This document shows, piece after piece, positions 1 through 35,695 of a stretch of DNA of 64,000 nt. The notes below the pieces were generated by a model. It was not told the origin of the DNA and did not search any database. It saw only the letters and a program-made list of their open reading frames with translations. Numbering within the stretch: position 1 is the first letter of the stretch; every line of letters begins with the position of its first letter. This DNA comes from Selaginella moellendorffii (taxonomy: Eukaryota > Plantae > Lycopodiophyta). Where the stretch lies: positions 159,700 to 223,699 of the forward strand of contig NW_003314282.1 in the NCBI RefSeq assembly GCF_000143415.4, given 5' to 3'. The position numbers and the translations under genes are program-made.

Positions 1-247
1 GTACATCATGGCAGGGCTTTGCCATGCAAGCAAGATGAAATGCAAGCATTGACAGAAGGTTTGCCATTCATGGGTGTTTTTGTGGATTGCTATGTCTCAG
101 TGGATCATGATAACAAGGTGAGGAAGAAGTTTCTGTCCAGCAAAGAAGTTGATCACCAGCAAAGGACTTTGGTCGAGTGGCTGATAACTGATTTGGCACC
201 TCACTGGAAGAGGAGAGCTGTGGGTGCTCTGGCAAAGCTAGCTTGAC

Positions 248-524
248 CCTGACAGATTCATCCTTGATGTATGGTATAGACCAGATGCAAGTTTGCACTA
301 GTTGGTGTCTGATCTTCCAAAGGAGAGTGTTATTGGCCGCTGCTGATTTCCATTGGCAGAAGGAAGATGGAGATGCCTTGATATTCCTGACAGATTCATC
401 CTTGATGTATGGTATAGACCAGATGCAAGTTTGCACTAGTTGGTGTCTGATCTTCCAAAGGAGAGTGTTATTGGCCGCTGCTGATTTCCATTGGCAGAAG
501 GAAGATGGAGATGCCTTGATATTC
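248..524. repeat. Tandem duplication with a 138-bp period
   Basis: cctgacagattcatcc...gccttgatattc at 248-386 is repeated at 386-524. Confidence 0.95.
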
Positions 525-570
525 AAGGATACATGGCCTCTCCTTTGTTGGTTGTGTTGGAAAATGGATC

Positions 571-642
571 TGGACAGGCCGGGGATTGAACCCAGGACCT
601 CCTACACCGGTGCCAGGTGCTCTACCACTGAGCTACCTGCCC
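571..642 (-). ncRNA. tRNA-like Pol III cassette in TRIM 3' LTR
   Basis: Minus strand GGGCAGG-TAGCTCAGTGGTAGAGC-A-CCTGGCACCGGTGTAGG-AGGTC-CTGGGTTCAATCCCCGG-CCTGTCC-A: 7-bp acceptor stem, D arm, T arm, A box (625-635), B box (583-591); degenerate anticodon arm; TTTT at 561-564. Confidence 0.85.
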
Positions 643-774
643 TGGTTGTGTGCATGTTCAGCTTAGTTCTAACACTCCCCCCTAAGCTGAACACGCCACA
701 CATCCCTACCTGCCAGTCCATGCCTACCACAGGCCATCCAACCATAGCTCCGATACCATGTTGGAAAATGGATC

Positions 775-846
775 TGGACAGGCCGGGGATTGAACCCAGG
801 ACCTCCTACACCGGTGCCAGGTGCTCTACCACTGAGCTACCTGCCC
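775..846 (-). ncRNA. tRNA-like Pol III cassette in TRIM 5' LTR
   Basis: Identical to 571-642. Confidence 0.85.
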
Positions 847-1318
847 TGGTTGTGTGCATGTTCAGCTTAGTTCTAACAGGTTGGACTTGTGATGGTCAGG
901 CATGGTTCCATTTTAGGGAGAAAAGATTGAAGTTTTTCACTATTTTGACTTGACTTTGGGACCAGTTTTGATGTACTCCCCAAGAACTTATATCCCCAAA
1001 AGCTGGCAACACTGCTGCGTCTACTTTGCAATTTTAATAGTGGAAAGTTGTCTATTTTTCATTGGCCATAGTTATGGTGCTGCAGCTGGTTGTGGCCATG
1101 GCTGCTGCCATTGCCATTGGCCCCTTGCTATTGGCTCTAGCCATGGTTGGTGTGGCTGTGCCATTGCAGATTGTGCTAAAAACATCACTCAAAGGTAAGG
1201 TTTTTCTTTTTACTTGATGTGGTTATTGTTGAGATTGTATTCTCCCATAGTCAGCATCACATTGAAAAGATGTAGTATATATATCTTTTTGTAGACAGTA
1301 TTTATATAAATTTGCTAC

Positions 1319-4300
1319 TATAAGTCTAAGTATACAGCTATGATGCCGTACTAATATTAGCGTAGTGGGATTTTGGTAGTTGTTAAATTGGTTTTAATCT
1401 AGACCACTCACTCATATATATAAGCTAAGGTTTTTGGGCTAATTGATATGCATATTTTCTATATTCCCTTTCCATATTCCATACACTCACATTGGTGGAG
1501 GTGAGGGGCACTTTTGATTATCCCTGAGGAGTGCTTAGATTTAGGATTTTTATTTAAATTTAGCTTTTGCATTGCCTAGATTTAGTTTTTTCCATTTCCT
1601 TTTTTTTGTTCTTTCCTTTCAGGATTTTGGTTTAAATTTAGCTTTTGTATTGTTTAGATCTCATTTTCCTTCTAGCTTTTTTCATTTCTCTTCTTTTTCT
1701 CTTTCCTTTTCATTTATTCATTTTTATGGCAGAGCAATAATCTCCTCTTCAGACTCTAGAGCAACAATTGGTGCAATTGCTTGATGCTATGTGATTGCAA
1801 TTGAATAACCAAACTCAGTTGATGGCGGCATTCATAGCATATAGTACAGCTCTTTTTGCTCTTGGTGCTAGTCCTCGCATTCAGCCGGAGTTCTTTTGTG
1901 GGAATTTTAGGGATGATGTGTACTATTGATTTGATCACTTCATGGTGATTGCCACATATTATTCTTGGGATGATGCTCAATGTTTGCATGAGTTTCCCAT
2001 GTATTTCCAAGGGATGGCACTACAATAGTACAATGGTTTGAGTACAGCCACTCATGGGGATTAGAGTATTTTCTCGGACGTTTTCAAACATGCATTTGGA
2101 CATGCTGATGATTGTAATGATACGTTTCAACAATTGTATCATTTTCGTCAAGGGTTATCAGAGTCAGTGATGCAATTTAGCATTTGTTCCCGAAACCTTT
2201 TACTTTGTGTGGAGCTAAATATGTTGGAGTGTTTCAAGTTGGGAATGTTATGGCCAACACTTCATCAAGATCTTGTAAAACTTGTGTATGCACTTGCTCC
2301 AGCCACCTTTGATAATGCCTTTCGCTTGGCACAATATTATACCACTTTTCGCTACATGTCCTTTAGCTCCACTTCCTGTAAGAGATGGGTCTTACTCCAA
2401 TGAAGATTGATGTTGCTACTGCTTGAATTCAAGGACAAGGGTGAAGACATGGTTGTGGCCATGATGTTTGCTATTGGGCATGTGATGAAGTTGGTCATAC
2501 ATATCAGCGTTGTTGGTGTTTTCCAGATTGGCGGCCTCCATTTCTTAGATGGAGACCTTGGCGTCAACAATGTCCTATTAGTATTGCTGTAGTGGAAGGT
2601 CTGGACATCGAGATGCATCTAAGAAAGCATGAGTCATGTGAGTAACAAAGGGATCTTGCCCAAATAAGTTAATGACCCTTCCATCTTTCTTTCAACAGTA
2701 TCATCAAGGGGTTCACTCAGCACCAATTCATCTAGTATTTACTTTTTAAACTTGTTTTTATAACAAGAGGTCTTTTATTATTCTCTCTGTATTGGTTGAT
2801 ATAGGTTCAAGTTTATCTTTTATGCTGGACCTGTTACCACACATTGCTGTTTACATTTGCATCTTGCAATAGAGCCAATTTTCATTCTTTATAGCAACGG
2901 CCGTACATATGTATGTATATAGAATGAGGTAGATCTAGTTATGCATGTGGGCAATCTCGAGCTTGGGTTGCAGTCATTGCATATGGTGCCAAGTCAAGCT
3001 TTTAACCTCATCCTTGGTATGGATTGGTTGCAACATAAGTATGCCAAATGTGACTTTGCAGTTTCTCCCCTTTATCTCATACTTCATTATATTTCATCAA
3101 TTCCTCTCATTTTTGTACTTCCTCATCCCTTTGTTTTTACCTTTGCTTCCATTACTTCCCATTACTTCCTCCTATGTTTTCGTCTTATTCCGCTCTTCTC
3201 TTTTCCAATCCTTCCGATAGTCTTTGTGTTGTAGTAGTTGACCAGCTTATGAAGGAGTATGCTGATCTCTTTGAATTTGACCTATCGTTTAGGGCTAATA
3301 TTGCCACACATTATCTGATTCCCACCGGGGATGTTTATTCAATCAAAGTTTCTATTCATCATCAGTCACCCAAAGAGATCAAAATTTTACATGCAAACGT
3401 CAAAGATATGTTAGAAAAAGGGTGTTATTTGAAAGTCATGGAGTCCTTGGGCATGTGAACCTCATATTGTGATAAAGCCTGATGGAAGTATTTATTTCTG
3501 CATCAACTATCATCCATTAAATGAATTGACGATCCTTGATATGTACCCTCTTCCTCACATTGCTGATCTTTTGGATCGTCTAGGGAGAAATCGATGGTTT
3601 ACCGAGTTAGATCTTGTTTTTAGGTACTGGCAAGTATCGATGGCCAAAGAAGATATTCCTAAGACTTTTTTTCATATACCGTTTGGTTTGTACGAGTACT
3701 TGGTGATGTTGTTTAGTTTGAACAATGCTCCAATGACTTTCTAGTAGATGATGGACAAGGTTCTTTATGATATGCCGGAGGTGATTGTTGACTTCATTGA
3801 TGATATCTTGATCCACTCAGAGGGGACGTGGGAGGAATACATCTCTAATGTTCATAAAGTGTTGGATCAGCTACAAGATGTTGGTTTAAAGCTAAAGCAG
3901 TCGAAGTGCGTGTTTGGGTCTAAAGACATGACTTATCTTGGGTACTATATTTTTCGTGAGGGTTTGTAAGTTGATCATGAAAAACTTGTGGCTATTCTAA
4001 AGTTCCCTACTCCAAAGTGTGTGAATGATATGCAACGCTTCCTAGGCAATTTATAATATCTCAGTCATTTTGTGGGTCATTTTTTTTATTGCATTGCACC
4101 ATTGCAAGCATTGTTAAAGTCATCAATGTCATTTTTCATTTGGTCTATAGACTGTGAAAAAGCGTTTATGGATCTCAAAGAGCTATTGATGACTCCTCCG
4201 GTTTTGGCATATCTTGACTACACTTGATCTTCCATTTTGCACGTGGATGCTTTTGATGTTGGTCTCGGAGATATGTTGATGCAAAAGAGCCCAAGTGTGT

Positions 4301-11899: not shown

Positions 11900-12520
11900 C
11901 ACTTAAACTTTGCAAGTTGCAGTGTTCCTGTATTGCAAGCTTGTATACCAAGAGGATATTCTGGGAATATTTTATGGCCCAAAGGGATTTAGGGCTCGAA
12001 TGTTCACCATGAATCTTACATAAGAACATAGGGAGAAAAATATATGAAAAACTCATCACTATATCTTGACTTTGCTTGTGCACACTCTTGTTTTTCTATG
12101 GCTTCAATCTTATATGGTCTTGGCCTTGACCTGACTGCATCCTAACTATTGAATTTCCATATAAAAATTCTTGCTAATGTTTTGTAATATTCTTTAGTAC
12201 CCAATTTATTATCTGGGTTGTTGAAATTTCTCAATCTCCTTTTAGCTTTATTATTTGTTTGCTGCTACTCAATGCCTTTGCACAAGCAAGCATTGCTTTG
12301 ATCTAGCGCCTTAAATATCTAATGCATCCAACACTTCAATCATCCTAAACATTATAAAAGGGATTGCAATTAAGAGGTTTATTTTCCTCTTCATTATTGG
12401 CCTCATGGCTAGCAACCTAGGATCAAGAGGGCTTCAATACCATGAAAGCGGAGAGCAGGGAGGAAAGAATCATATATAGGTATATATACATTGCCTTGTG
12501 GGTACAACAAAAATGTCATC

Positions 12521-15500
12521 TTAATTTTTACGAAATTTGAAATTTTTGCCAAAACTCATGTAAATGTTAGACATAAGATCGTAAGCCGCTGAGTTCTCTG
12601 GATCCAACACCACCAGTGCCTCAAACGCAATCCTCCCATGCTTCACGTCCCTCCACTTGTGACAAGCCCCAAGCAGCACCATCCAAGCCATGCCACTCCT
12701 TGGTCTCGACTCCACCACCTCCAGTGCTTCCTCAAGCATCCTCGCTCGTCCCAGCAGATCCACCATGCAAACATAGTGCTCCTCGCTGGGCTTCACTCCA
12801 TACCTGGACTCCATCGCTGCGAAGACACTCCTTCCTTTCTCGACAAGCCCCGCTCGGCTACAAACCGTAAGCACGCTCACGAAAGTCACGTGATTTGGTC
12901 CAAGGCCTTCATCGACCATAGCTCCAAATCTCTCAAACACCACCTTGGTATCGCCCACGCGACTGTATCCTGCTATCAGCGACGTCCAAGTTACCACGTC
13001 CCAGCTTCCTTGGCGAGAATCAAACACTAGCTGGGCTTCCTCGGTTCTCCCACACTTGCCATAAAAGTCCACCAGGCACGTCGCGAGAACTCCATCGCCC
13101 TCCAAGCCACGCCTGTAAATCTCCGAGTGGATCTCTTTCCCAGCTTGGAGAGACACAACCCTGGCACAAGCGGTGAGAGCAGCGGCCAGAGTTTGAGCGT
13201 CGGGGGTGTAATTCTTGTCGACCAGTTTGTAGAGCTCCAGTGCTATGTCGCCTTCTCCATCGTCGGCGTATCCCAGCATGAGCGTGCTCCACAAAACCAG
13301 GCCCAGATCTGGCATAGTGTCGAAAACTCGCCGAGCATCGCCCATGCTTCCACACTTGACGTAAAAGTCGATCAAGCTGCTAGCGACGAAGGTGTTTTTC
13401 AAGTCACCGGGACACTTTGCTGCTGCCTCCGAGTGTACCGCCATTCCTTTCTCGAGAGCTGCTAACTTGACAAAATTTCGATCGACTTGAATGCCATCTT
13501 CTTTCTCGGCCAGACCAATGCAGGCTTTCAGTGCTGCTACGATCGCTCGAGTGTCCGGGACACAGCCTTGTGGTCGCAAACCAGTAAAAGCCTCCAGTGC
13601 CAGAGCTTCTTCACCGTTTCGAGCGTAGCCAAGCACGAGTGACGTCCAAGAGACCAAGTGTTGTGGCGCAGCTCCTCCCAGGAAGACTCTCCGAGCCTCC
13701 TCCATGCTACCACAGTGCGCGTACATGTCGATCAAAGAGCTTGCCACGAAAACGTTCGAGTCGCAGCAGCACTTAACAGCCTGAGAGTGAACATCTCTTC
13801 CTCGCTCGAGAGCTGCAAACTTCTTCTTGCCATGGTTCCCAAGTTCTCGTTCTTTCCCGGCCAAGCCCGTGCATGCCTTCAAAGCCGCGACGAACGTCAA
13901 CCAGTTCGGCACAGATCCTTGTGATTGCATCTCTCCAACCAAGTCCAGAGCTACTCCTTCCTCTCCATTCTCTGCGTGGCCGAGAGTCAGAGCAGTCCAG
14001 AGAACTACATCTCGACGGTGCCTTGGTATTCTGTCAAAAACCCTGCGAGCTTCCACCATGCTCCAACACTTCGCATACAAATCCACCAGAGAGCTCGCCA
14101 CGAACACGTCCGTTTCCAAACCACGCTCGGCAACTTCAGCGTGGAGAACTGCTGCTACTTCCAACGATTTTCGCTTGACAAGCTTGCCATATATCTCGGT
14201 GCCTTCCTCTCTCGCTGCTTTCCCGGCACAGGCCTTCAACGCCGCAACGTAAGTCCGACAATCTGGTGTGCACCTTCGAGAATTCATGCACCGGAATAAC
14301 TCGAGAGCAATCTCTTCCTCTCCATTGTCAGCATAGCCCAGCACCAAAGCCGTCCACAACACCGAGTCGTGCGAGACGATCCTGTCGAAAACTTTGCGAG
14401 CATCGAGCAAGCTCCCACATCTTGCATACATCTCCACCAGCGAGCTCGCCAGGAAAACATCCGCGTCGTAGTAAAACTGCGACACAGCCATCGCGTGAAT
14501 GGCCATTCCCTTCTCCAAGCTTTGCGTCTTCACAACCTTTCCATCTATCTTCTGCCCGGTTTCCATCGCAGCCAGAGCAATGCAAGCTTTTACCACCGCC
14601 ACGAGAGCCTGTCCGTTCGGAGAGCATCGCTGGAGTTGCATGCGTTGGAACAGCTCGAGGGCCAGCTCTGGCTCGCGGTTCTCGGAGTATCCCGCGATCA
14701 AAGTTGTCCACGACACAACATCCGGGCGCTGGATCCTCTCAAACACCTGGCGAGCGTCTTCGAGGCTTCCACACTTGAGAAACATATCGAGCGCTGCGTT
14801 TGCCACGAATATATCTTTGTCGGAGGAGCCACTCTCCACAGCCTGTACGTAAACCTCTCTTCCTTTTTCCAGAGCCGCCACCTTGACGAGCTTTTCTTGG
14901 CTCAGGAGCTTAAACTCTTCTTTCGCTGCTAGACTTGTGCACGCCCTGATAGCCGCAACGAAAGTTCGACAGTCCGGATCGCAGCCTTTGGATTTCATGG
15001 TGGCAAACAAGCTCAAAGCCACTTCGCCCTGACCATTCTCCGCATAACCAAGTATCAAAACCGTCCAGGAGACCAAACTGTGGCTCGGCATCCTCTGGAA
15101 GACCTGGAAGGCGTCAACCAGGCTCCCACACTTGGCATATACACTGATGAGCGTGTTTGGAAGCTTGATATCCAAGTCCTGGCATCCACCAAAACTGTCG
15201 ACTTCCCTGTGAATTTCCCTGGCTTTCTCGAGCGATGCAAACCTTACCAAAACCTTGCCACTGGGACCATGAGCTTCTCTTGCTTCCTCCCTGGAAGCCA
15301 AGCAACTGCAAGCCTTTAGAGCAGCGACATAAGAGAGACAATTGGGAGAACATCCTTCTGGCCTCATCCTGGAGAAGAGATCGAGCGCGAGCTCTCCTTG
15401 ATCGTTGTCGGCATAGCCCAGCACGAGTGCGTTCCAAGGGACCACATCGTCGTGCGGGAGTTTGTCGAAGATCTTGCGAGCGTCCGCGAGGCTGCCACAT

Positions 15501-15676
15501 TTTGCGTACATGTTTACCAGAGTGGTGGCGACAAAGATGTTTGTTTCCATACCCGTTTGGATGGCATCAGCGTGAGCAGTTCTTCCATGCTCCAAGTTTT
15601 TGGCAGCGGAGCAATCTTTGAGCCGTGCAAGGAGCCGCGAGATTTTTGGATCGAACCTTGACGTGTTGGCACGCAT
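12521..15676 (-). CDS. PLS-class PPR protein with C-terminal E domain, no DYW (putative organellar RNA-editing factor), ~1051 aa, intronless
   Basis: Repeated P-L-S motifs (MYAKCGSL.DAR.VFD..VSWT.LI.GY), E domain (HYVCMVDLLGRA..WMVLLGAC..AAYDLMSNIY); first ATG at 15676. Confidence 0.93.
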   Translation of the reverse strand: MRANTSRFDPKISRLLARLKDCSAAKNLEHGRTAHADAIQTGMETNIFVATTLVNMYAKCGSLADARKIFDKLPHDDVVPWNALVLGYADNDQGELALDLFSRMRPEGCSPNCLSYVAALKACSCLASREEAREAHGPSGKVLVRFASLEKAREIHREVDSFGGCQDLDIKLPNTLISVYAKCGSLVDAFQVFQRMPSHSLVSWTVLILGYAENGQGEVALSLFATMKSKGCDPDCRTFVAAIRACTSLAAKEEFKLLSQEKLVKVAALEKGREVYVQAVESGSSDKDIFVANAALDMFLKCGSLEDARQVFERIQRPDVVSWTTLIAGYSENREPELALELFQRMQLQRCSPNGQALVAVVKACIALAAMETGQKIDGKVVKTQSLEKGMAIHAMAVSQFYYDADVFLASSLVEMYARCGSLLDARKVFDRIVSHDSVLWTALVLGYADNGEEEIALELFRCMNSRRCTPDCRTYVAALKACAGKAAREEGTEIYGKLVKRKSLEVAAVLHAEVAERGLETDVFVASSLVDLYAKCWSMVEARRVFDRIPRHRRDVVLWTALTLGHAENGEEGVALDLVGEMQSQGSVPNWLTFVAALKACTGLAGKERELGNHGKKKFAALERGRDVHSQAVKCCCDSNVFVASSLIDMYAHCGSMEEARRVFLGGAAPQHLVSWTSLVLGYARNGEEALALEAFTGLRPQGCVPDTRAIVAALKACIGLAEKEDGIQVDRNFVKLAALEKGMAVHSEAAAKCPGDLKNTFVASSLIDFYVKCGSMGDARRVFDTMPDLGLVLWSTLMLGYADDGEGDIALELYKLVDKNYTPDAQTLAAALTACARVVSLQAGKEIHSEIYRRGLEGDGVLATCLVDFYGKCGRTEEAQLVFDSRQGSWDVVTWTSLIAGYSRVGDTKVVFERFGAMVDEGLGPNHVTFVSVLTVCSRAGLVEKGRSVFAAMESRYGVKPSEEHYVCMVDLLGRARMLEEALEVVESRPRSGMAWMVLLGACHKWRDVKHGRIAFEALVVLDPENSAAYDLMSNIYMSFGKNFKFRKN

Positions 15677-15910: not shown

Positions 15911-17775
15911 ATGGCGGGCGACGAGTCCCTGCTGCGCGATTGGATCGATCGGCGTCCAGACTACTCCACTCCTGCGAAGCGCAAGCTGGTGGAGGCAGTG
16001 GAGTCGCAGCTCTTGTTCTCTGTCAAGGATTTGAGGCAACCTCGTGCCAGGGCTCGATTACCGCCATGCCGAGATGTCAGCGGCGGGCATGTTCGGCAAC
16101 GCTCGCTCCGATGCAGTGCTGCGGCGCGTGCGGAGCGGATTCCATCGCAGCGCTTCCAAGCGTGGACTTCGCGGAGGTGAAAGTGTTTGACAAGCTGCCA
16201 TGGCCGAGCTTGCAGCCCAGGGTGCCGTGCGTTCCGTCAGAGGCTGATGGCATCTGGCTTGTGGGGCGCCCAGTCTTCAAAGAGATCCTGGACAGATTCG
16301 CGGCGAGCAAGGACGATGTGATAGACTTGGACGGGAATGTCGGCTCGGGGAAAACTTACCTCTTGCTCATGCTAGCTTTGCATTGTCTCCACACGTTCTC
16401 ACCAGCAGCAAGGAAGTCGCGGCTGGTTTGCATCTTTAGCATGCCAGACAACAATCCCGACTTGCTGACGGCGATCAGGGAGGCTCTCTTGGTGGCCTTT
16501 GCGGATGATGCTCCGACGTGCAACTGGCTGTGCTACATTGAGGACTGGAAGGAGATGATGGAGGTGGTGTCATGGTTGAAACACACCAACGATCTGTTCT
16601 TCGTTGTCGACGAGTACGATGTTTTGGACAGCAGGGCCTCGAACAGCTCCCTTATGGACATGTGGCTTGCTTTGAAAGCCCTCGAGGAAAGCTCAACCTG
16701 CTTGCATGGTGGCTCGACAAGGCGGAACGAGGCCTATGCCAGGGTTTTCAAGACCACTCACAACAGAAACTACCACTGCAAGTACACAGCCTTCACGCCC
16801 GAGGAGACGAAGCAGTGCGTCACCTGGAAGGGCTTGCCATCCGAGCCTGGTGAAATGCAGGCATTGACGGGAGGTTTGCCACTCATGGTGCGTGTTTTCG
16901 TGGATTGCTATGTCGCAGCGGCGACTTCTGCAGATTGTGAGGGCGAGGAGGTTGAACAGCAATGAAGGACTGTTGAACAGTGGGTGACGGAGATAGCGGC
17001 CTTGAAACATGTCAGGAGGAGAATAGCGGTGGCTGCGCTATCGGATCTGATAGCTGGCAGAGGCAGGATCGACTCTGATAGTTTTGATCCTCGGTGGATT
17101 GTACAAAATGGGGACAAGTTTGCGCTGGTTTCTGATCTTACCAAGGCAATGGTTGTGACTGCCGTTGGAATGCATTTGGATAAGGCAGATGGAGATGCCT
17201 TGATGATGAAAGTGGCAGAGCAGCTCATTGAAGAATGCATGGCCGCACACCTTGCACCGTTGCCAGTTGAACTCATGGTGGAAAGGATTGTAATCCACAT
17301 CGCGAAACAGTGGGGCATGGGGCCATTGAAGGGAAAGAAGATTGAAGCTTTTCATTATTTTGGCTTGAATTTGGGACCAGTCCTAATGCACTCGCCAACA
17401 ACTTCTATCCCCAGCAGCTGGCAACGCTGCTGTGTTGACTTTGTGACTCGAAGAGTGGAAAATGATCTGCTCTTCATTGACGTGTTTCGAGTTTCTGTTG
17501 GGCCACAAAAAAGGATCACAAAATGGCAAAGTGTGGACAAGTTCTTCAAGCCTGAGAACATGGGTCTTTATACAGCTGGTTATGATGTGGAAGATATCAG
17601 ATGGGGTTTTCACTGGATTGGTCCAGAGGGTGGTAAGCCAGACTGGTTTCCCTCAAGGTGGTCGTCTGCTGGTGGTGTTAACTATAACGAAACATACATT
17701 GTGCTCTCTGCCGTGGCACATCCCCAAGAGGTTGATGGATTTTTTATCAAAGCACTAGAAGCTGTTGTGATATGA
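15911..17775 (+). pseudogene. P-loop NTPase paralogue with frameshifting deletions and a premature stop
   Basis: Near-identical to 30287-32206; deletions at ~16070-16140, ~16400 and ~16950; CGA>TGA stop at 16963-16965. Confidence 0.9.
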
Positions 17776-18010: not shown

Positions 18011-21000
18011 CTTGTAGAATTTGGGATTTTAGTTTAGATTTAACTTTTTCATTGTCTAAATCTCCCTTTTCTTATTGTTTTTCTCAACTTTTTTCTTTCT
18101 TTTTTATTTATTATTTATTTGTTTCCTCCTCTTTTAACTCTAGAGTAGCAATTTGTGCAATTTTTTGATGCTATGTAGTTGTAGTTGAACAATCCGACTC
18201 AATTAATAGCAGTATTCATAGCGCATGGTACAACTCTTTTTGTGTTTGCTACCAATCCTCACATTTGGCTAAAGTTCTTTTGTGGGAATCTTGGGAATGA
18301 TGTGTACCATTGATTCAATCATTTCACAGTTATTGCCACATATCATTTTTGGGATAATGTTGTAAATGTGACTTCGGGTATTAAAAGATGCTTGTCTGCC
18401 AGTCCTTACGGACACTCTCTCCTTACTGCCATGATGGCAAGAGGTCAGTACTGTTGGTTCCCTTTATTGGCCCCTTTTGTCCAAGTGTTAGTAAATTAGA
18501 CTTAGCATTTGTACTTGGCCGGATGAGCATAAGGACGGAATTCCTAAGGGTTCTTGCCAAGCCAGTGCAAGATATAGCAAAAGAGAACTAAAAAGCTGGG
18601 CCAAGTATGCTTGGCCAAATAGACACTTGCGTATTGAGACTAGTCCCTCAATATCGCTAGATGATAGCTTACTGTGTCTGCCAAACACCCTTGCTATCAT
18701 GCCCTTTATATTAGTCTTATTTCGGTTCCAAATGCTAATTATGGAAAGTGTCAAGATTTGCTCATTTGGCATATCTACAGAATGTAGATATCGGCCTGAA
18801 CACAATGGTGTTCGTTTCATGTCCAAATTCACAATCTAAAAACATTCCATATTTAATAAGTTTCGAGCTTGTCCCAAATACTAACTCCTAATACTAAGGG
18901 AGGTTTGGGGTGAAAGCCCAAAGCATGTGTTCCTCAAGGGGGGGGGGGGGGGGGGGGGGCTATGGGGGGTTTCAAAAGTATAGTAAGGATAGTGGTTGGA
19001 ATGCATGTCCGACCACCTAAGACATTAATTTGGCTCCCACTGGGTTGTGTTGCTCGTTGTTCTGCATCTGGCTTGGGTCTAAGCCCAAGCTCCACACTGC
19101 TCTAGTTGGTGGGGTACCCTCCTCCTTGTTTTAGGCCACTAGTATGTCAAAATTGTGCCGACACCATTTTGTGTGTAGGTGCTGGATATGGGGAGCTGGT
19201 GCTCATGGGATTGTACTGGACCCTCGTTTTGTAGCGCAACGGGCTTGGAGTTCGGCTTCAAATTCAGGTGCGCTACATTTGGTATTAGAGAAATTGTCTC
19301 AGCGATTCCTATCCAACTTTTGTCAGATTTTCTGACTCAAGTTGCATACGCAGAGACTTTTCTAGTAGATCCAAAGCGACCTGTGTAGGATTAGTTGGAT
19401 TGCACCATTCGGTAAGAACGTTGTATGCATGTTCATTTACTGATAGAGGCATGCATGCAGCTAGCGGGATGGTGAAAAGGAACCGTGCTGATGACGCTGA
19501 AACATCTAGACGAGCAAATTGAGAGGAGGAAACTCCTAGTAGAGATGTTGCGGAAGAGGCTGAGGCCAAGTTAGAAGAGGAAGAGCTAGATGCTGTGGCA
19601 TTGTAGTGTACGGCTCAGGAAGTCGAGATTTAGAATTTGCGAAAGGAGATTCGCAAATTGAAGGAGAACAAAAAGAGGAAGAAAGAAGCTGAGGCAGCTA
19701 AACCAGCTAAGCCTAAGCAACCGGACTCCTCTTCAAGTTCTGAGGACGATGAAGTTCTGCAACCACCCCCGATTGCATGAGTTTCAAAGTTCAAGCCTCC
19801 GAAACCACCCAACTTTAGAGGCATGCGGGACTATCAAGTTTTGGAAGACTGGGTCTACGATATGGAAAACTATTTCATAGTGGCAGATGTAAATGATCGT
19901 ACGAAAGTTGCGTGCATGCAGTCCTTTCTCACTGATCATGCCAAAACTTGGTGGCACCAAATGTGTGCTGAAAAAGGGCAAACTAGAAGTTGGACTAAGA
20001 TGCGGTCTCGTATCTGTAAGGAATACTTGCCGGACGATCTTGGTCTGAGACTTTGCGCGGAGCTGCGGCGGTTAAAGCAGTGAGGGGACCTCATGCATTA
20101 CGTTAATGCGTTTGCTCAGAAGCGCATTATGATTGCAAATATGAATGACAAAGATGCTCGGAGTTATTTCCTGGAAGGTTCACTTTCTTGCAATGAGATT
20201 TTGAAGTTTAAGCTAAAGACGTATCTAGAGTGTAAGGAGGCAGCACAGCAAGTTGCCTTTAGTCACTCGCTTATGGAACAATATCAGCAACCGTATGCTG
20301 GTAACTCGGATAAGAATAAGAATTCTGGGAATAAACAAGGTGACCGGAAACAGAGGGTGGAAGGTAGGTTCCGCTCTGGAGGCTCACAAGCAACAATTAA
20401 CAAAGGTGGTGGTGGTTGGAGACCACAAGCATCTTCTTCTGGTCCTAGGCCCTCTGCTCCTCCTCCTAGTGGGTACAAGCAGCAGCAACTTGCAAAACCT
20501 GCTCCTAGCAGAACAAGTAGTGTAGGTCATTGCTTCCATTGTGGAGAGTCAGGACATAGGTCCTCAGAATGTCCTAACAAGCATAAGACAAGGTCTCGTG
20601 TTAATGTCATGAGGGAAGACGGTGGTGGTGAAGCTGAAGACGTTGACGAGCTGGTCAATGCAGACTATGAGGAAGAGGAGCTGAGTTACTTTCATTGCTT
20701 TCCTCAAGCTTTTCTCGCAGTCAATGCAAACACTAATCCATTGATGTATTTGGTAGGCTTTGTCCGTAGACACCGAATCCGAGTGATGATTGATACAAGA
20801 GTTACACACAGTGTGATATCCGAAGACTTAGTTAAGTTGTTAGGATTAAATGCTAAGCAAATGTCACCTATGCACTTCCGGTTTGCGGAAGGTGGGCAAG
20901 TAGCCAAAAAGTTTGTGAGTGATGTTCCAATAAAGATATCCAAGTGGAAAGAAAGAGTGGACTTGGTAGTGTTGAAAATACAAGATTTTCAGATGGTGTT

Positions 21001-23118
21001 TGGTATGGATTTCTTCAACAAATACATAAAAGGGATTTATGGTGCTGGACAAAGTCATATCACATTGAAGTCAGAAGGATGTCCTGATATGTCCTTTTAG
21101 TTGCAAAAGCGCTCCTCAAAGGATTGGGATGCTAAGTTCCTGACTGCGAGAGCCGCTCAAAAAGCAGCTAAGAAGGGATGTCAAACCTTTTGGGTTCAAG
21201 TGATGGAAGCTGAGGGTATGGGTGACTTGGTTCAAATTGGCGACGGGGTTGATCCTGTACCAAAGAAAATATTGGAGTTATTGGCGAGGAATCAGGATAT
21301 CTTCCCGACGGATTTGCCATCAGGGCCACCTCCTAGCCATGAGGTTGATCATCGGATTGAGGTTATACCGGGTTCTAAACCACCTACAAAAGCTCCATAT
21401 CGGTTGAATATCAAGGAGATGGCTGAACTCAAGAAGCAACTCATGGAGCTTCTTGACAAAGGTCATATCCGACCAAGCAAGTCACGTTATGGAGCGCTGG
21501 TCCTTTTTGTTATGAAAAAGGATGGAACCATGAGGATGTGTATCGACTATCGATCACTCAACAAGATCACGGTCAAGAATAGTTATCCTTTGCCCCACAT
21601 TGATGACTTGTTTAACCAACTCTTAAAGGCTAAGTATTTTACACGACTTGATTTGCTGTCCGGGTATCATCAGATACAGGTGGATGGTGGATCAGGATGT
21701 GGAAAAAACAGCCTTTAAGACTCGGTACGGATCTTATGAATTCCTTGTCATGCCGTTCGGGTTATGTAATGCTCCAGCAATGTTCAGCACTATCATGGAT
21801 AGAATATTCAGAGATTATTTGGACACATTTGTTGTCCTATATATAGACGATATTCTAGTCTTCAGCGAAACGTTGGAGGGTCATTTGAAACACTTAGAGC
21901 TGGTGTTTCAGAAGTTGCGCAAACACAAACTGTATGCTAAGGAAAGTAAATGTGCTTTTGGTCAATTGCGCGTAAACTTTCTCGGACATATAGTTGGTGC
22001 TAGCGTAATTGAGGTTGATCCAAAGAAGGTGGAAGCGGTGAAGTCCTAGGAAGTCCCGACCACTATATCAGATGTTCGTTCCTTTCTCGGTTTGGCGGGA
22101 TACTATCGTAAGTTTGTCCGCAATTTTGCAAGAATTGCTCTTCAGTTGACTAAGTTGACAAAGAGTAGTATTCCGTTCCATTGGACACCAGCTTGTCAGT
22201 GTGCTTTTGTACGATTGAAGGAGATCTTGACTATGGTTCCTGTTCTCAGGATCCCAGATCTTGATAAACCCTTCGAAGTGCATTGTGATGCGTCTGGCTA
22301 TGCTATTGGTGCCATGTTACAGCAAGATTGTGACAAAGCGGTTGGTGTTACGCTAAGGCGACATGGTTGTCCCGTTGCATTCTATTCCAAGAAATAGGAT
22401 GAAACTCAACGAAAATGGCCAACGCATGAGAAAGAGATGTTTGCTATAGTATCAGCCCTGGAACATTGGAGACACTACTTGGGTGGACATACCAAGGTTT
22501 ATACAGATAGTAACACACTGAGCTACTTTGCTATGCAGCCTAAGCTTACACCGAAGCAAGCTCAAGCTTGTTAGATATGATATTGAAATCATATATAAAC
22601 CTGGTAAAGACAATATTGTTCCGAATGCATTGAGTCGTCAGGCTCAATTCCGGGCCATATCAGCAATCAGTTTGGACTGGTTGGAGGACGTTCGGGCTTC
22701 ATGTGGAAGTGATCCATTGGCGAAGGCAATCTTATGCTGTGCGGGGTTGTTGAAGCAAAGCCCTGGTAGCGAAGCAGAGAAAGTTGCTAGTCGCACTAAT
22801 GCGAAGCTTCACTTCTCAGTTCGGGATGGGCTTATATTCTATAAGCAAGAAAGATTGTATCTTCCCTCTAAGGATCTGCAGCTGTTGTTTCTGCGGGAAC
22901 ATCATGATGTTCCAGTAGCGGGACATGGTGGACAGCGAAAAACTCTGGCTTCATTGAAAAAGGGATTTTTCTGGTTTGGTATGGAAGGTGATGTAGCGGA
23001 ATATGTCCGTTCCTGCCCTATATGCTAGCAATGTAAGCGCAAAATTGAGAAGCAAGCTGGAAAGTTGCAGTGCATTCCCGCACCAGCATGGCCATTTCAG
23101 AGTGTGACACTTGATTTC

Positions 23119-24554
23119 TGTAAGCAACTAATTTTTCCATTCTACTTTAGTCATTTAACCACACCTCCGACCACTTGGAGGAGTCTCACTCACAACCTCC
23201 ATAAGTCCTATTTCGGACTTGGGCTTGCTAGCCCCAAGAATGGCATCCCCGCCACTCAACCTTTGCACTTGGTCCAAGTGCTCCATGTGTCCGATCCCAT
23301 GACTGACACCCCAAGGTACCACCGACATACTGGCCTGTTACGCTAAGGCAATGCCCATTCACCTTGGTCATACCGGTGGTCTAACACCACCTACATCGCA
23401 GTCCCGTCTCTCAAAGATTGGGCCATCCATCCATGAGTGACCATCCTATGTCCACTCCTTGGCATCCTTAAGATGCCCACAGACATGGGGAACAGCCTTC
23501 CCCAATATCCCTTTAACAGTCCCCACCAAGATCCTTTTCTGTCCATGGCCGTGTTCACCAAAACTGCCACTAGATCAAGGCCCATAGGCCCGACCACCAA
23601 GTCCCACTGTCCTCTGGGACTTCCTCACCACATGACTGTGTCATTGATCACCACACCAAAGGATCACTGCTCTTCCTTTCCATAGCCTGGGACTTTGGGA
23701 CAGCATTTTGGAACACCGTGGCCCTACGCGGGCCTCCTGGGTACTCTCCCCGCCTTCCACCTTTGGGTGCTCTAGCCATGGGCTTAGAGCGAGGTTTCGT
23801 TGAGCCACGTTTGGTATCCAAGTAGGTAGTGCCACCCACACTTGGACTGGGAGCATCGGCTACTCGATCTCCTGGGGGAACTAGAGCCGGCTCTTGAACA
23901 CTTCACCAAGCTACCTCGCTTGTCAGTCTGTGTTCACTCTAGTTTTGGACTTCCCAATGGGCAGCTCATCACCCAACACTGGGTACAGCCTTCCTGGGCC
24001 AAACTGACTTTTCCTAGGCCAAACTGGCCTTTCCTGGCCAAACTGGCTCCATTGGGCTCCAACCCCCACACTCTCCCTACTTTACTTTTGGAACCCCCTG
24101 CAGCCCCCCCCGGGGGATGATCGCTTTGGGCTTTCACCCAACTGCCTGCATTAGTATTCAGACTCGGACTCGGTCTCGGTCCCAGTTTTGGACTCGGACT
24201 CGGTCTCGGTCTCGGTTCCCTCTCGGACTCCATCTCGGACTCCATCTCAGACTCCACTTCGGGTCCATCTCGGGTCCATCTCGGACTCCATCTCAGACTC
24301 CACTTCGGGTCCATCTCGGACTCTTCCACGTGTCATGTGTTGGTCCTTTTTTGGTCCCTTTATGGAGCCTTGCTTATTGGTTGCCTCGTGCTCGCTCCTC
24401 GAGCACTTTGTTGGGAGTTCCACTCCCACTCTCGACCTTCCAAGTCGGAGCTTTTAGTCCAAACGTGTTATGCTCGTTTGGCTTTCGCTTCTGCCACTAC
24501 CACATGGCACCCTTTCCGGCTCCACATTGGGGCCTAGGGATTTTGTGTCTCACA
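23119..24554 (-). mobile_element. Solo LTR (family S, copy 2) inserted in the integrase of element D
   Basis: TG..CA termini; TSD ATTTC/GTTTC; interrupts SVTLDF|VTCLPK; opposite orientation to copies 1 and 3. Confidence 0.9.
24160..24325. repeat. 6/12-bp minisatellite (GACTCG / GGACTCCATCTC) inside solo LTR
   Basis: Visible tandem units; same array at ~6290-6395 and ~27915-28087 in opposite orientation with different copy numbers. Confidence 0.85.
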
Positions 24555-27500
24555 GTTTCGTCACTTGCTTGCCAAAGTCAAAGAGTTATGATACTTTGAT
24601 GGTGGTTGTGGATTGGTTGTCAAAGATTGCACACTTCATTCCAACTGTGGGAACGGTAAATGCAAAACAAGCAGCAAAGCTCTTTTTCCATGAAGTAGTG
24701 TGGGTTCGTGGTCTTCCTGAAGAAATGATCTCGGATAGAGATTCGAGGTTTACGGGGAAGTTTTGGGGCACACTATTCCAACTGTTTAGTACCAAGTTAA
24801 AATTTAGTATGGCTTATCATCCTCAAACTGATGGGCAGACCAAACATGTGAATGCTCAAGTTGAGGATTATCTGTGGTACTATGTCGCGGCGGACCAACA
24901 CGACTAGGTTGAGCATTTGGATACAGCAGAAATCTATTATAACAACACATTTCACATCGCTATAGGCTGTTTTCCATAGGAGATGCTGCAAGGGAATGCT
25001 CGTGGGGTTCCTCAACAGATTGTTGTACCGAAACCAATGACCGAAGTGTTGGTCCCAGCCGTTGAGACTTATGCGAAGCAGCTACGCCAAGGTTGGTCTC
25101 GGGCTACTAAGACGATGGGCAAAGCTCAGGATAGGTATCGACATGATAAAGATCAGCATCGTCGAGATGTATCCTATCAAGTGGGAGATCAGGTGTGGCT
25201 ATCTTCCCGGAACTTGAACATTAAGAGTTCTTTGTCTCGGAAGCTTTTGCCGAGATATGTTGGACCCTATCGGGTGTTTAAATGTCTTAGTGAGGTATTC
25301 TATCAGTTGGATCGGTCTGCGGAGATGTCCAATGTTCATAATGTATTTCATGCCAATTTATTGACTCCTTATACTATGGATATTGCACATCAAAGGGAGA
25401 TTTGTCCACCACCAGACATTGTGGATGGTGAACTTGAGTATGAAGTAGAGGCTATTTTGGATACACACTAGCTTAAACATGCCAAACGTCGAGAGTATCT
25501 AGTTAAGTGGAAAGGTTACCCAACTTGTGAGTCAACTTTGGAGCCTCTTAGTAATCTTACCCATGCTCGTGAGCTTGTCACGCAGTATAAGAATAATAAT
25601 AAAAAATAAATAGCTTTTGTGAACTTTGTAATAAATCTTGCAAATCAATAAAGTAATCTATTTCTATAAATCAAAGTGTCGTTTCTCTCGTTCGTTAGTA
25701 CTTGGGTTAGTTTTGGCAGGCTGACTTTAGCACTTCAGTGCATGGGTCCAATCCATAACCATGGGGAAAACTATTATAGACTAATCACAAGTCCCCGCCT
25801 CTCTCGATGGTTCATTTTTGAAAAGGGGCATGGTCATGTAAACAACTTAATCTGCCAGTTTATAATAGTTCCCGACAAGGTTGATTTCTTGCTTAGGGGA
25901 AGTTGGGCCTCTGGCCTTCTCCCTATGTCCCTGCAGGCAAGGATGTATCATTCCTTTGTAAGCCAAGTGGTGCTTGGAGAAGCAAGGGTGGCTAACTCCG
26001 TTAGTCATTTCCTTGTCGGCGACGGCCGGAGGGTGTTTGAGTCGTAACGTCTTTGGACGTAGAGGAGAGGTCGTTCCATAACTTATTTAAGTTGGTGCGT
26101 TTCCCACATAGTGTGCTTTCCGTTAACTTTCAGAGTTGTTTCCTTGACGGTTTGCTAGACTCGAGTATGCATCGACGAGGACGTCGATCTTCCCCAAGGG
26201 GGGGAGAGTGTCGTGAATGTGACTTCAGGTATTGAAAGATGCTTGTCGGCCAGTCCTTACGGACACTCTTTCCTTACTGCCATGACGGCAGGAGGTCAGT
26301 ACTGCTGGTTCCCTTTATTGGCCCCTCTTGTCCAAGTGTTAGTAAACTGGACCTAACATCTGTACTTGGCCGGATGAGCATAAGGACGGAATTCCTAAGT
26401 GTTTATTTGGCCAAGCATACTTGGCCCGGCTTTTTAGTTCTTTTTTACTATATCTTGCACTGGCTTGGCAAGAACCCTCGCATATTGAGACTAGTCCCTT
26501 AATATCGCTAGTTGATAACTTACCGTGTCTGCCAAACACCCTCACTATCATGCCCTTTGTGTTAGTCTCATTTCGGTTCCAAATGTTAATTATGGAAAGT
26601 GTCACGATTCGCTCATTTGGCATATCTACGGGATAGTGGTTGGAATGCATGTTCGACCACCTGAGACATTAATTTGGCTCCTGCTAGACTGTGTTGCTCC
26701 TTATTTTGTGTCTGGCTTGGGTCTAAGCTCAAGCTCCACGCTGCTCTAGTCGGTGGGGTACCCTCCTCCTCGCGTTAGGCCACTTGTATGTCAAAATTGT
26801 GCCAGACTCCGTCTGACACCATTTTGCGTGCAGGTGCTGGATACGGGGAGCTGGTGCTCGTGGGATTGTACCGGACCCTCATTTCGTAGTGCAATGGGCT
26901 TGGAGTTCGGCTCCAAATTCAAGTGTGCTACAGATAATGCTCAACATTTGCATGAGTTTCCCACGTGTTTCCAACGGACGGCACTACAATGGTACAATGG
27001 TTTGAACACATCCACTCGTGAGGATTGGAGTATTCTCCCAGACGTCTTCAAATGCACATTTGGACATGCCGACGATTATAATGATGTCTTTCAACAATTG
27101 CATCATCTTTATCAATGGCTATTCGAGTCAGTGATGCAATTTAGTATTTGTTTTCGAAGTCTCTTGCTTCGTGGAGAGTCAAATATGTTAGAGCAGATCA
27201 AGTTAGGAATTTTGTGGCTAGCACTTGCTCTAGCCACCCTTGACAATGCCCTTTGCTTGGCACAACGTTATAAAATGTCACCTCTTCCACTATTTGTTAC
27301 ACATTCTTTAACTTTACTTCTTGTGGGAAATGGTTTTGTTCAAATAGAGGTTGATGCTACTGCTGCTCGAGTTCAAGGACTAGAATAATCACATGGTTGT
27401 GGCCATGATGTCCACTGTTTAGCATGTGATGAAGTTAGTTACAATTATTGGCATTATCAGTGTTTTCTGGATTGGCAACCTCCATTTCTTGGATGAAGAC

Positions 27501-30286: not shown

Positions 30287-32206
30287 ATGGTGGGCGACGA
30301 GTCCCTGCTGCGCGATTGGATCGATCGGCTTCCAGACTACTCCACTCCTGCGAAGCGCAAGCTGGTGGAGGCAGTGGAGTCGCAGCTCTTGTTCTCTGTC
30401 AAGGATTTGAAGCAACCTCGTGCCAGGGCTCGGTTACCGCGATGCCGCCTTCGCAACGAGATGACAGTGGCGGGCATGTTTGGCAACGCTCGCTCCGATG
30501 CAGTGCTGCGGCGCGTGCGGAGCATTGCGGATTCCATCGCAGCGCTTCCAAGCGTGGACTTCGCCGAGTTGAAAGTGTTTGACAAGCTGCCATGGCCGAG
30601 CTTGCAGCCCAGGGTGCCGTGCGTTCCGTCAGAGGCTGATGGCATCTGGCTTGTGGGGCGCCCAGTCTTCAAAGAGATCCTGGACAGATTCGCGGCGAGC
30701 AAGGACGATGTGATAGACTTGGACGGGAATGTCGGCTCGGGGAAAACTTACCTCTTGCTCATGCTAGCTTTGCATTGTCTCCACACGTTCTCAAAGGAGA
30801 ATGGAACAGCAGCAAGGAAGTCGCGGCTGGTTTGCATCTTTAGCATGCCAGACAACAATCCCGACTTGCTGACGGCGATCAGGGAGGCTCTCTTGGTGGC
30901 CTTTGCGGATGATGCTCCAACGTGCAACTGGCTGTGCTGCATTGAGGACTGGAAGGAGATGATGGAGGTGGTGTCATGGTTGAAACGCACCAACGATCTG
31001 TTCTTCGTTGTCGACGAGTACGATGTTTTGGACAGCAGGGCCTCGAACAGCTCCCTTATGGACGTGTGGCTTGCTTTGAAAGCACTCGAGCAAAGCTCAA
31101 CCTGCTTGCATGGTGGCTCGGCAAGGCGGAACGAGGCCTATGCCAGGGTTTTCAAGACCACTCACAACAGAAATTACCACTGCAAGTACACAGCCTTCAC
31201 GCCCGAGGAGACGAAGCAGTACATTACCTGGAAGGGCTTGCTGTCCGAGCCTGGTGAAATGCAGGCATTGACGGGAGGTTTGCCACTCATGGTGCGTGTT
31301 TTCGTGGATTGCTACGTCACAGCGGCGACTTCTGCAGATCGTGAGGGCGAGGCGAGGGAGAAGTTTCTGTCCACCAAGGAGGTTGAACAACAACGAAGGA
31401 CTGTGGAACAGTGGGTGACGGAGATAGCAGCCTTGAAACGTGTCAGGAGGAGAAGAGCGGTGGCTGCACTATCGGATCTGATGGCTGGCAGAGGCAGGAT
31501 CGACTCTGATAGTTTCGATCCTCGGTGGATTGTACAAAATGGAGACAAGTTTGCGCTGGTTTCTGATCTTGCCAAGGCAATGGTTGTGGCTGCCGTTGGA
31601 ATGCATTTGAATAATGCAGATGGAGATGCCTTGATGATGAAAGTGGTGGAGCAGCTCATTGAAGAATGCATGGCCGCACACCCTGCACCGTTGCTGGTTG
31701 GACTTATGGTGGAAAGGATCGTAATCCACATCGCAAAACAGTGGGGCATGGGGCCGATGAAGGGGAAGAAGATTGAAGCTTTTCATTATTTCGGCTTGGA
31801 TTTGGGACCAGTCCTAACGTACTCGCCAACAATTTATATCCCCAGCAGCTGGCAACACTGCTGCGTTGACTTTGCGACTCGGAGAGTGAAAAGTGATCTG
31901 CTCTTCATTGACGTGTTTCGAGTTTCTGTTGGGCCACAAAAAGGGATCACAAAATGGCAGAGTGCGAGCAAGTTCTTCAAGCCTGAGAACATGAGTCTTT
32001 ATACAGCTGGTTATGATGTGGAAGATATCAGATGGGGTTTTCACTGGATTGGTCCAGAGGGTGGTAAGCCAGACTGGTTTCCCTCAAGGTGGTCGTCTGC
32101 TGGAAGTGTTAACTATAATGAAACATACACTGTGTTCTCTGCCGTGGCACATCCCCAAGAGGTTGACAGAGTTTTTATCAAAGCACTCGAAGCCGTTGTG
32201 ATATGA
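30287..32206 (+). CDS. Intronless 639-aa P-loop NTPase with putative C-terminal PD-(D/E)xK-like nuclease fold (Crinkler/RHS-type NTPase-REase-like)
   Basis: Open ORF; Walker A LDGNVGSGKT, Walker B LFFVVDE, later LTGGLPL motif; C-terminal YIP.....CVD...F.VSV pattern. ATPase motifs are clear, the nuclease call is inference. Confidence 0.8.
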   Translation: MVGDESLLRDWIDRLPDYSTPAKRKLVEAVESQLLFSVKDLKQPRARARLPRCRLRNEMTVAGMFGNARSDAVLRRVRSIADSIAALPSVDFAELKVFDKLPWPSLQPRVPCVPSEADGIWLVGRPVFKEILDRFAASKDDVIDLDGNVGSGKTYLLLMLALHCLHTFSKENGTAARKSRLVCIFSMPDNNPDLLTAIREALLVAFADDAPTCNWLCCIEDWKEMMEVVSWLKRTNDLFFVVDEYDVLDSRASNSSLMDVWLALKALEQSSTCLHGGSARRNEAYARVFKTTHNRNYHCKYTAFTPEETKQYITWKGLLSEPGEMQALTGGLPLMVRVFVDCYVTAATSADREGEAREKFLSTKEVEQQRRTVEQWVTEIAALKRVRRRRAVAALSDLMAGRGRIDSDSFDPRWIVQNGDKFALVSDLAKAMVVAAVGMHLNNADGDALMMKVVEQLIEECMAAHPAPLLVGLMVERIVIHIAKQWGMGPMKGKKIEAFHYFGLDLGPVLTYSPTIYIPSSWQHCCVDFATRRVKSDLLFIDVFRVSVGPQKGITKWQSASKFFKPENMSLYTAGYDVEDIRWGFHWIGPEGGKPDWFPSRWSSAGSVNYNETYTVFSAVAHPQEVDRVFIKALEAVVI

Positions 32207-32324: not shown

Positions 32325-32835
32325 CAGGCTTCTTGACAACCTTTCCATCTATCTTCAGCCCGGTTTCCAGCTTTTGTCACCGCGACGAAAGCCTGTCCAT
32401 TTGGAGAGCATCGCTGGAGTTGCATGCGTTTTTGGCTCGCAGTTCTAAGTTGTCCCATCTGATCCTCTCAAACACGTCTTCGAGGTTTCCACACTTGAGA
32501 AACATATCGAGCGCTGCGTTTGCCACGAATATATCTGTGTCGGAGGAACAGCTTTTTCCAGAGCCGCCGCCTTGACGGCTCAGGAGCTTAAACGCTTCTT
32601 TCGCCGCCAGCTCGCCCTGATAGATTCTCCTCATAACAAGGTACCAAAACCGTCCACGAGACCAAACTGTGACTCGGCATCCTCTGAAAAACCTGGAAGG
32701 CGTCAGCCAAGTTCCCACACTCCCACACTTGGCATATAAACTGATGAGCGTGTTTGGAAGCTAAGCCCTGGCATCTCTCAACTTCCCTGTGAATTTCCCT
32801 GGCTTTATCGAGCGATGCAAACCTTACCAAAACTT
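32325..32835 (-). pseudogene. Fragmented PLS-PPR copy
   Basis: DIFVANAALDMFLKCG, ADAFQVFQRMPSHSLVSWT; shares derived indels with the copy at ~40130-40430. Confidence 0.85.
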
Positions 32836-32839
32836 ACAA

Positions 32840-33315
32840 GTTCCGATGCTCTTCATGTGGCGAAGATGATATTGCTGAACGAGCTGCAATTCAACGTGAT
32901 CCCAGGAACCTCCTTCTCCAATGCCATTGGGATGGTTTCAACATTTCAAAGACAAACAACAAAATCAGGTAAAATTGAAGTTTTGTTTGTATGCTTTATG
33001 ATCTAATTTGAATCTACTTTCTCCAGAGTTTCGGATCCTCAATGCTGGAAAGTTTTCAAATCACAGGCCTTTTCCAATTGTTTTTGTGCCACTGAGGAAG
33101 TTCGATGGGAAGACAGCAAGTGAGGTTGTTCCAGCAGTAGTATCCATCATCGTGGATGAGCTTGAAGAGCTGTTCGAGCATGGAATTCAGGTGGTGGATG
33201 GCGAAGCTGGAAAAGCATTCACGCTGAGAGCAATGCTCATGCAATGGGCTGGAGATTACAATGCACACTGTGAGGTTGGCAAAATCGTGAACAAGGGAAG
33301 GAATGGATGTCGTAG
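32840..33315 (+). mobile_element. CACTA/En-Spm transposase (Transposase_21-like) fragment
   Basis: RDPRNLLLQCHWDGFN and IVDELEELFEHGIQVVD..FTLRAMLMQWAGDY..GC motifs. Confidence 0.75.
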
Positions 33316-33372
33316 TTATGTGTTTTCATTTCTCTTAGCAATTTTGTTTAAGTGCTTGTATCTTCTCTATAG

Positions 33373-35224: not shown

Positions 35225-35257
35225 ATTCTTTTCCGTCCATTTTCCTAGGGTACAGCT

Positions 35258-35695
35258 TCCAGCTCTTATTTGAAGCAACCTCATGCCAGACCAAGCTACC
35301 TTCGCAACAGCATGTCAGCGGCGGCAACGCTCTCTCTGATGCAGCGCTGGATGAGGAGCATCCCGGATTCCATCGCGATTCCAACTGTGGAGGTGAAAGT
35401 GTTTGAGAAGCTTGCAGCCTAGGGCGCCTCACATTTCGTCGGAGCCTGATGGGATCTGGCTTGTGGGGGTCCAGTCTTCAAAGAGATACCCAAGAGATTC
35501 ACAGCAGCAAGCGAGAATGATGTGATACTCTTGGATGAGAATCTCAGCTCGGGGAAACTTTACCTCTTGCTCATGCTATCCTTGCATTCTCTCCACAAGT
35601 TCTCCAAGGGGAACAAAGGTGCAGCAAGTCTCATCTTTAGAATGCCAGAGAGAAATTCCAGCTGCTCATGGCGATCAGAGAGGCTCTCTTGGTTC
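35258..35695 (+). pseudogene. Highly degenerate 5' fragment of the P-loop NTPase family
   Basis: ctgatgggatctggcttgtgggg, LDENLSSGKLYLLLMLSLHSLH, gatcagagaggctctcttgg match 30380-30900. Confidence 0.8.

Follow-up and report, generated by a model that had tools for sequence, protein, structure and literature searches.

A 324 bp TRIM element with tRNA-like units in its LTRs, a probable copy of Helenus-1_SMo, at a pseudogene locus of Selaginella moellendorffii

Host locus and layout of the element

The window, the whole 64 kb stretch of DNA analysed, begins with a decayed copy (positions 1 to approximately 1020) of a locally duplicated family of intronless 639-aa open reading frames, which has no Pfam match. 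Intact or near-intact paralogues are present at positions 30287-32206 and at about 15.8-18.0 kb. The decayed copy corresponds to positions 31240-31900 and 16800-17450 of these paralogues, and compared with them it has deletions of 22, 9 and 29 bp. A 138 bp (46-codon) segment of the pseudogene is found as a perfect (100%) tandem duplication at positions 248-523, which ends 31 bp from the insertion described below and either arose very recently or reflects an artefact of assembly. An open frame of 236 codons with a TTG start (positions 243-953, plus strand) spans both 138 bp repeats and the whole of the insertion; it is probably mechanical.

The insertion is a 324 bp element on the minus strand. 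A repeat search shows two direct repeats of 120 nt with 100% identity and a spacing of 204 nt, which represent the two LTRs. The first-pass annotation had proposed identical LTRs of 120 bp, a directly abutting primer-binding site (PBS) of the initiator-Met type, a polypurine tract (PPT) and a perfect GGTTG target-site duplication, and all of these are present in the sequence (Table 1). The PBS (TGGTATCGGAGC) differs at one position from the canonical plant initiator-Met form (TGGTATCAGAGC), and this position would pair as G.U. A second match to the PBS is not found within the window. Similarly, a 23-mer from the LTR finds no additional match across the 64 kb when up to 3 mismatches are tolerated (chance expectation 0). 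The element has no recognisable protein coding; the open frame at 243-953 is the sole long one across it, is on the opposite strand and has no Pfam match. The small size (well under 1.5 kb), the lack of coding capacity, the terminal direct repeats, the PBS, the PPT and the target-site duplication are together the properties of a TRIM.

Table 1. Positions in the window of the element, its parts, the predicted hairpins and the neighbouring retroelement
Feature	Positions	Strand	Remarks
Target-site duplication GGTTG	550-554		copy adjoining the 3' LTR
3' LTR	555-674	-	120 bp, TGTTAG...CCAACA
TTTT of 3' LTR	561-564	-	7 nt past the tRNA-like unit
tRNA-like unit of 3' LTR	571-642	-	LTR positions 33-104; A box 625-635, B box 582-592
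Hairpin, ~20 bp	645-705	-	stem between LTR positions 9-29 and the final ~22 nt of the internal part
Internal part	675-758	-	84 bp
Polypurine tract (PPT)	675-683	-	AGGGGGGAG, immediately upstream of the 3' LTR
Smaller predicted hairpin	737-765	-	U5 end and PBS start with bases just past the PBS; fold of 774-643
Primer-binding site (PBS)	747-758	-	TGGTATCGGAGC, abuts the 5' LTR without a spacer; plant initiator-Met type
5' LTR	759-878	-	120 bp, TGTTAG...CCAACA
TTTT of 5' LTR	765-768	-	twin of the 561-564 run
tRNA-like unit of 5' LTR	775-846	-	A box 829-839, B box 786-796
Target-site duplication GGTTG	879-883		second copy
Older gypsy-like LTR retrotransposon	~18351-26932		LTRs about 18351-19277 and 26202-26932, 82-91% alike

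The paralogues show the unoccupied site. When the element and one GGTTG are excised from the host copy, a MAFFT alignment runs straight over the insertion point, with ..ttgttGGTTGgacttgtgatg in the host, ..ttgctGGTTGgacttatggtg in the paralogue at ~31.69 kb and ..ttgccAGTTGaactcatggtg in the paralogue at ~17.26 kb. The target site is present as a single copy in both paralogues, as GGTTG in the former and AGTTG in the latter. An empty site had been claimed for the intact paralogue near position 31695; the alignment there is clean, and the second paralogue gives the same result. The unfilled site in the paralogues, the deletions in the host copy and the 138 bp duplication indicate that the element sits antisense in a pseudogene.

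The LTRs have no differences over 120 bp, which is in keeping with the description of the element as very young, but this description is loose, as the identity bounds the age only to less than about 1-2.5 million years. The 95% bounds are <~1.0, 1.8 and 2.5 million years at assumed rates of 1.3e-8, 7e-9 and 5e-9 per site per year, respectively.

Family identity and other copies

The element closely matches Helenus-1_SMo, which has an LTR of 120 bp, an internal part of 85 bp, a total length of 325 bp and a target duplication of 5 bp (Kojima 2024, Biology 13:119, PMC10886601; Repbase). The source of Helenus-1_SMo listed in Table S1 of that paper is GCA_000143415.2, Selaginella moellendorffii v1.0 (Kojima 2024, PMC10886601). 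The window is from scaffold GL377586.1 of the same assembly, which encodes the 639-aa protein found in the window. In a comparison by eye with the consensus sequences of DataS1, the LTR has no differences from the Helenus-1_SMo-LTR consensus, and the internal part departs from the 85 bp consensus only in that a GGG run has lost one G, at position 712/713. The missing base is corroborated by other copies of the element in public runs X1 and X4, which have a C inserted behind position 712. Thus species, assembly, LTR, PBS, PPT and 5 bp duplication are shared with Helenus-1_SMo, and the only differences are the 1 bp deletion (84 versus 85 bp internally, 324 versus 325 bp in total) and the insertion site.

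The layout is also that of Helenus (TRIMp3), with two LTRs, a PBS and PPT between them and a 5 bp duplication as in plants and fungi. Each LTR has a tRNA-like sequence with an A box (TRGCY..YGG) and a B box (GGTTC), in accordance with the motif definition of Kojima 2024 (PMC10886601). Positions 555-878 (minus strand) are therefore very probably one intact, recently inserted Helenus-1_SMo (TRIMp3) copy, which would be mobilised in trans and promoted by Pol III. The proposal of a TRIM with a tRNA-derived LTR unit in the Helenus/TRIMp3 class is supported on every structural point tested. The further statement that the class is rare rather than wholly new is right as to the class but undersells the match, as this is a near-exact copy of a published element. 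Judged from its sequence, the element belongs to a family that was already published in 2024 from the same assembly, so that the identification is correct and not new. The finding adds one more mapped copy of this family. Helenus-1_SMo has copies that match the consensus and have identical LTRs, which is consistent with recent activity in the one plant from which Helenus is known. A count of TRIMs in S. moellendorffii gave eight subfamilies, and tRNA is not mentioned there (Gao et al. 2016, PMC4717578).

Several other known systems have similarities to the element. Cassandra is a TRIM with 5S rRNA-derived LTRs (PMC7215508, PMC10853983). Like the element described here it is a noncoding plant TRIM, is mobilised in trans and has a Pol III-type small-RNA gene and an oligo-T terminator in each LTR. 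It differs in that its LTR module is derived from 5S, in its length of 565-860 bp and in its transcription, which has been shown experimentally for Cassandra and not for Helenus. The first-pass annotation had pointed to both the Helenus and the Cassandra entries; comparison with them gives Helenus-1_SMo, with an identical LTR and an internal part one G short, and the Cassandra 5S is absent. A permissive Rfam search of positions 1-3000 returned tRNA only and no 5S. The same search had no hammerhead match up to an E value of 1, and a retrozyme was rejected. The tRNA-derived SINEs (SINE2) likewise have a head of tRNA origin that bears A and B boxes, and they share the short length, the dispersal and the absence of coding, whereas they lack LTRs, a PBS and a PPT and rely on LINE machinery for copying. 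The LTRs, PBS and PPT found here do not represent such a SINE, which has a single head, no LTRs and a LINE-type 3' tail. A relationship in origin has been proposed, in which a SINE2 inserted in the LTR of a TRIM gave rise to Helenus (Kojima 2024, PMC10886601). Ordinary plant TRIMs or SMARTs are similar in size class, in the LTR-PBS-PPT-LTR layout and in the 5 bp duplication, but their LTRs have no small-RNA gene module.

Public sequencing runs, compared as assembled contigs from four runs in which RNA ends or levels are not readable, show the element in other contexts. The flanks of the locus are in no indexed public run (the best share of words is 0.19). Part of the stretch is present in 20 indexed runs, with shares that are, by our own estimate, approximately what the element alone would give. 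Depth is zero at positions 524-539 and 892-1000 in all four compared runs. Several contigs continue past an LTR end (555, 674 or 878) into unrelated sequence, and the element is carried without the flanks of the locus in the four runs. The family is thus dispersed, with many further copies in different flanking sequence, and has both old and young members. In the DNA-like run X2 there are many variant contigs with about 90-95% identity. Older copies have diverged mainly through C>T and G>A changes; several of these fall at CG or CHG sites, which is the pattern to be expected of methylated old copies. The depth of the LTR in X2 is 4-6 times that of the internal part, a ratio that genomic DNA containing solo LTRs should give. 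Run X4 has a contig of 235 nt that consists of the LTR, the 85 bp internal part and a further 30 nt (k minus 1), with a depth of 2,496 compared with ~17 for a flank branch; in the assembly graph this contig closes on itself.

The depth pattern in run X1, a run that is only guessed to be RNA, is the opposite of that in X2. The summed depth is 190,000-340,000 over positions 668-779 and about 12,000-13,000 over the tRNA-like core, so that the core is 15-25 times shallower than the internal part. The depth falls near the edges of the tRNA-like units, at about 775-795 and 636-667. This gap could represent a library bias against the tRNA fold, or a processed stretch between the units that accumulates.

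An exact-protein look-up for an allelic scaffold gave none; a 1051-aa pentatricopeptide-repeat (PPR) protein of the window has no record, and the 639-aa protein is found on one contig only. No genes were called in the 10 kb between the gene of the 639-aa protein and the side of the element.

The tRNA-like unit and transcription

It had been claimed that 72 of the 120 LTR bases form a tRNA cloverleaf with intact A and B boxes, followed by TTTT 7 nt downstream, and ARAGORN, Rfam and the base pairing agree with this. ARAGORN reads the LTR unit as Arg-CCG. The Rfam tRNA match is 52.7 bits (threshold 29) with an E value of 8.7e-10 and extends over the full length of the model. The cloverleaf has 20 base pairs in its acceptor, D, T and anticodon stems, each of them standard or G-U. 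The A box TAGCTCAGTGG and the B box GGTTCAATCCC are consensus boxes at normal spacing. In the anticodon arm the fifth pair is a G.G mismatch and an A is in place of U33, and the arm can fairly be termed degenerate, as it had been. The minimum-energy fold of the 72 nt unit is not the cloverleaf, which has -24.8 kcal/mol compared with -27.9 kcal/mol (z -0.39). A tRNA can be predicted in only a few Helenus families, from bivalves and fungi (Kojima 2024, PMC10886601).

The intact A and B boxes and the oligo-T suggest that Pol III drives the element. The tRNA-derived unit with its intact boxes would provide an internal Pol III promoter with a start at LTR position 33, and the transcript would end at the TTTT of the 3' LTR (LTR positions 111-114). 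U3 would then comprise positions 1-32, R would be about 80 nt long and U5 only 6-9 nt. For copying, the element would depend on an autonomous LTR retrotransposon that supplies reverse transcriptase and integrase, and initiator-Met tRNA would be the primer. On its sense strand the element has no T4 runs other than the TTTT of each LTR. A template RNA made by Pol III must consequently read through the first run and stop at the second. Use of Pol III in Helenus itself has been called unvalidated (Kojima 2024, PMC10886601). Wasp Helenus LTRs, in a portion of the same source, have an oligo-T of six residues (T6) shortly past their tRNA-like part (Kojima 2024, PMC10886601). This T6 and the terminators in Cassandra LTRs indicate that the terminator-in-LTR design is general, and the read-through problem with it. 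A scan for bacterial-type promoters and terminators found nothing and is irrelevant here.

Secondary structure models show a hairpin at the junction of the internal part and the 3' LTR. The 15 nt loop holds the G-run of the PPT and the start of the LTR, i.e., the PPT/LTR junction. The predicted hairpin has a delta G of -30.6 kcal/mol (z -7.84; none of 200 shuffles was as good) and recurs in folds of the whole element. A common variant, 695 G>A, retains the hairpin pair as U.G. A smaller hairpin is predicted where U5 meets the PBS (Table 1). The words 'hairpin', 'inverted', 'termination' and 'TTTT' are not mentioned in Kojima 2024 (PMC10886601).

Three other explanations of the locus or its expression were weighed. 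That no transposition took place, and that a local tandem duplication of a 204 bp tRNA-gene segment (1.6 copies) imitates an LTR-internal-LTR arrangement, has a negligible probability. The 100% identical 138 bp tandem duplication that adjoins the element is the one observation in its favour. It is refuted by the agreement with a published dispersed family, Helenus-1_SMo, by a PBS and PPT exactly at the repeat edges together with TG..CA ends and a 5 bp duplication, by paralogues with empty sites that lack all 324 bp and not half of them, and by the different flanks around other copies. It is also very unlikely that the LTR units function as tRNA-Arg(CCG) genes and have been dispersed through the genome by the element. 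The ARAGORN call, an Rfam score over the gathering threshold and four stems that are able to pair are as such genes would have them. However, an A is found where the near-universal U33 belongs and the anticodon stem has a G.G pair, so that the canonical anticodon arm of a functional tRNA gene (a 5 bp stem and U33) is not present, and Helenus is judged not likely to code for a functional tRNA (Kojima 2024, PMC10886601).

The remaining explanation concerns the same element with a different transcript, and it is possible although doubtful. The template RNA would come from Pol II or from read-through of a neighbouring gene, the tRNA-like units would serve otherwise, for example as RNase P or RNase Z cutting signals or as a 3' tRNA-like end, and the RNA between the units would be stable. 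The TTTT of the 5' LTR (765-768) speaks for it and against efficient full-length Pol III transcripts, as it would stop a transcript about 45 nt ahead of the PBS unless read through. The X1 depths are also in its favour, both in the ratio, which is opposite in the DNA-like X2, and in the drop near the edges of the tRNA-like units. If the tRNA-like unit were in R, its depth should be at least equal to that of the internal part, and the core in X1 is 15-25 times lower. Against this, structured tRNA-like RNA is frequently under-represented in libraries, X1 is RNA by guess only, and the contigs do not contain RNA ends or levels. In addition, the A and B boxes are intact across Helenus families, which points to selection on the promoter (PMC10886601). 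A Helenus-1_SMo copy with a putative Pol III promoter remains the preferred reading.

There is an outside chance that the tRNA-like units are RNase Z or RNase P cutting signals, and not or not only promoters, that release an abundant RNA of ~130 nt. Such an RNA may consist of U5-PBS-internal-PPT-U3 and be bounded by the two modelled hairpins, one with the PPT/LTR junction in its loop. If this is true, the processing of Helenus would be nearer to that of retrozymes, where ribozymes set the ends, than to that of Cassandra.

Candidate helper elements and other features of the window

The suggestion that the element was possibly mobilised by a copia element is not specifically supported, since an initiator-Met PBS and a 5 bp duplication also fit Ty3/gypsy. 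Searches with blastn-short and nhmmer found no similarity to the LTR, the internal part or the junctions elsewhere in the window. The older gypsy-like LTR retrotransposon (Table 1) has a gag-protease ORF at positions 20093-21100 (zf-CCHC, RVP_2) and is the only retroelement in the window with gag and protease. Its PBS, TGGTATTAGAG, is two bases past the LTR, and its PPT is AAGGGGGGGAGAG. It has in common with the element at 555-878 just the generic initiator-Met-type PBS and a G-rich PPT. The similar PBS and very similar PPT of this gypsy-like neighbour imply that these sites are no pointer to Copia in particular. How Pol III passes the terminator of the 5' LTR, and which autonomous element does the copying, are questions for specialists.

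Four long PPR open reading frames are present in the 64 kb, at 12524-15676 (minus strand), 38386-40155 (minus), 45081-47087 (minus) and 61256-63277 (plus). Three of the four have strong Pfam PPR matches, and the frame at 12524-15676 was assigned on the basis of its translation alone. An ORF at 33008-33817 (plus strand) with a match to Transposase_21 (tnp2) is located inside an annotated gene for a 680-aa CHAT-domain protein (about 32815-35422).
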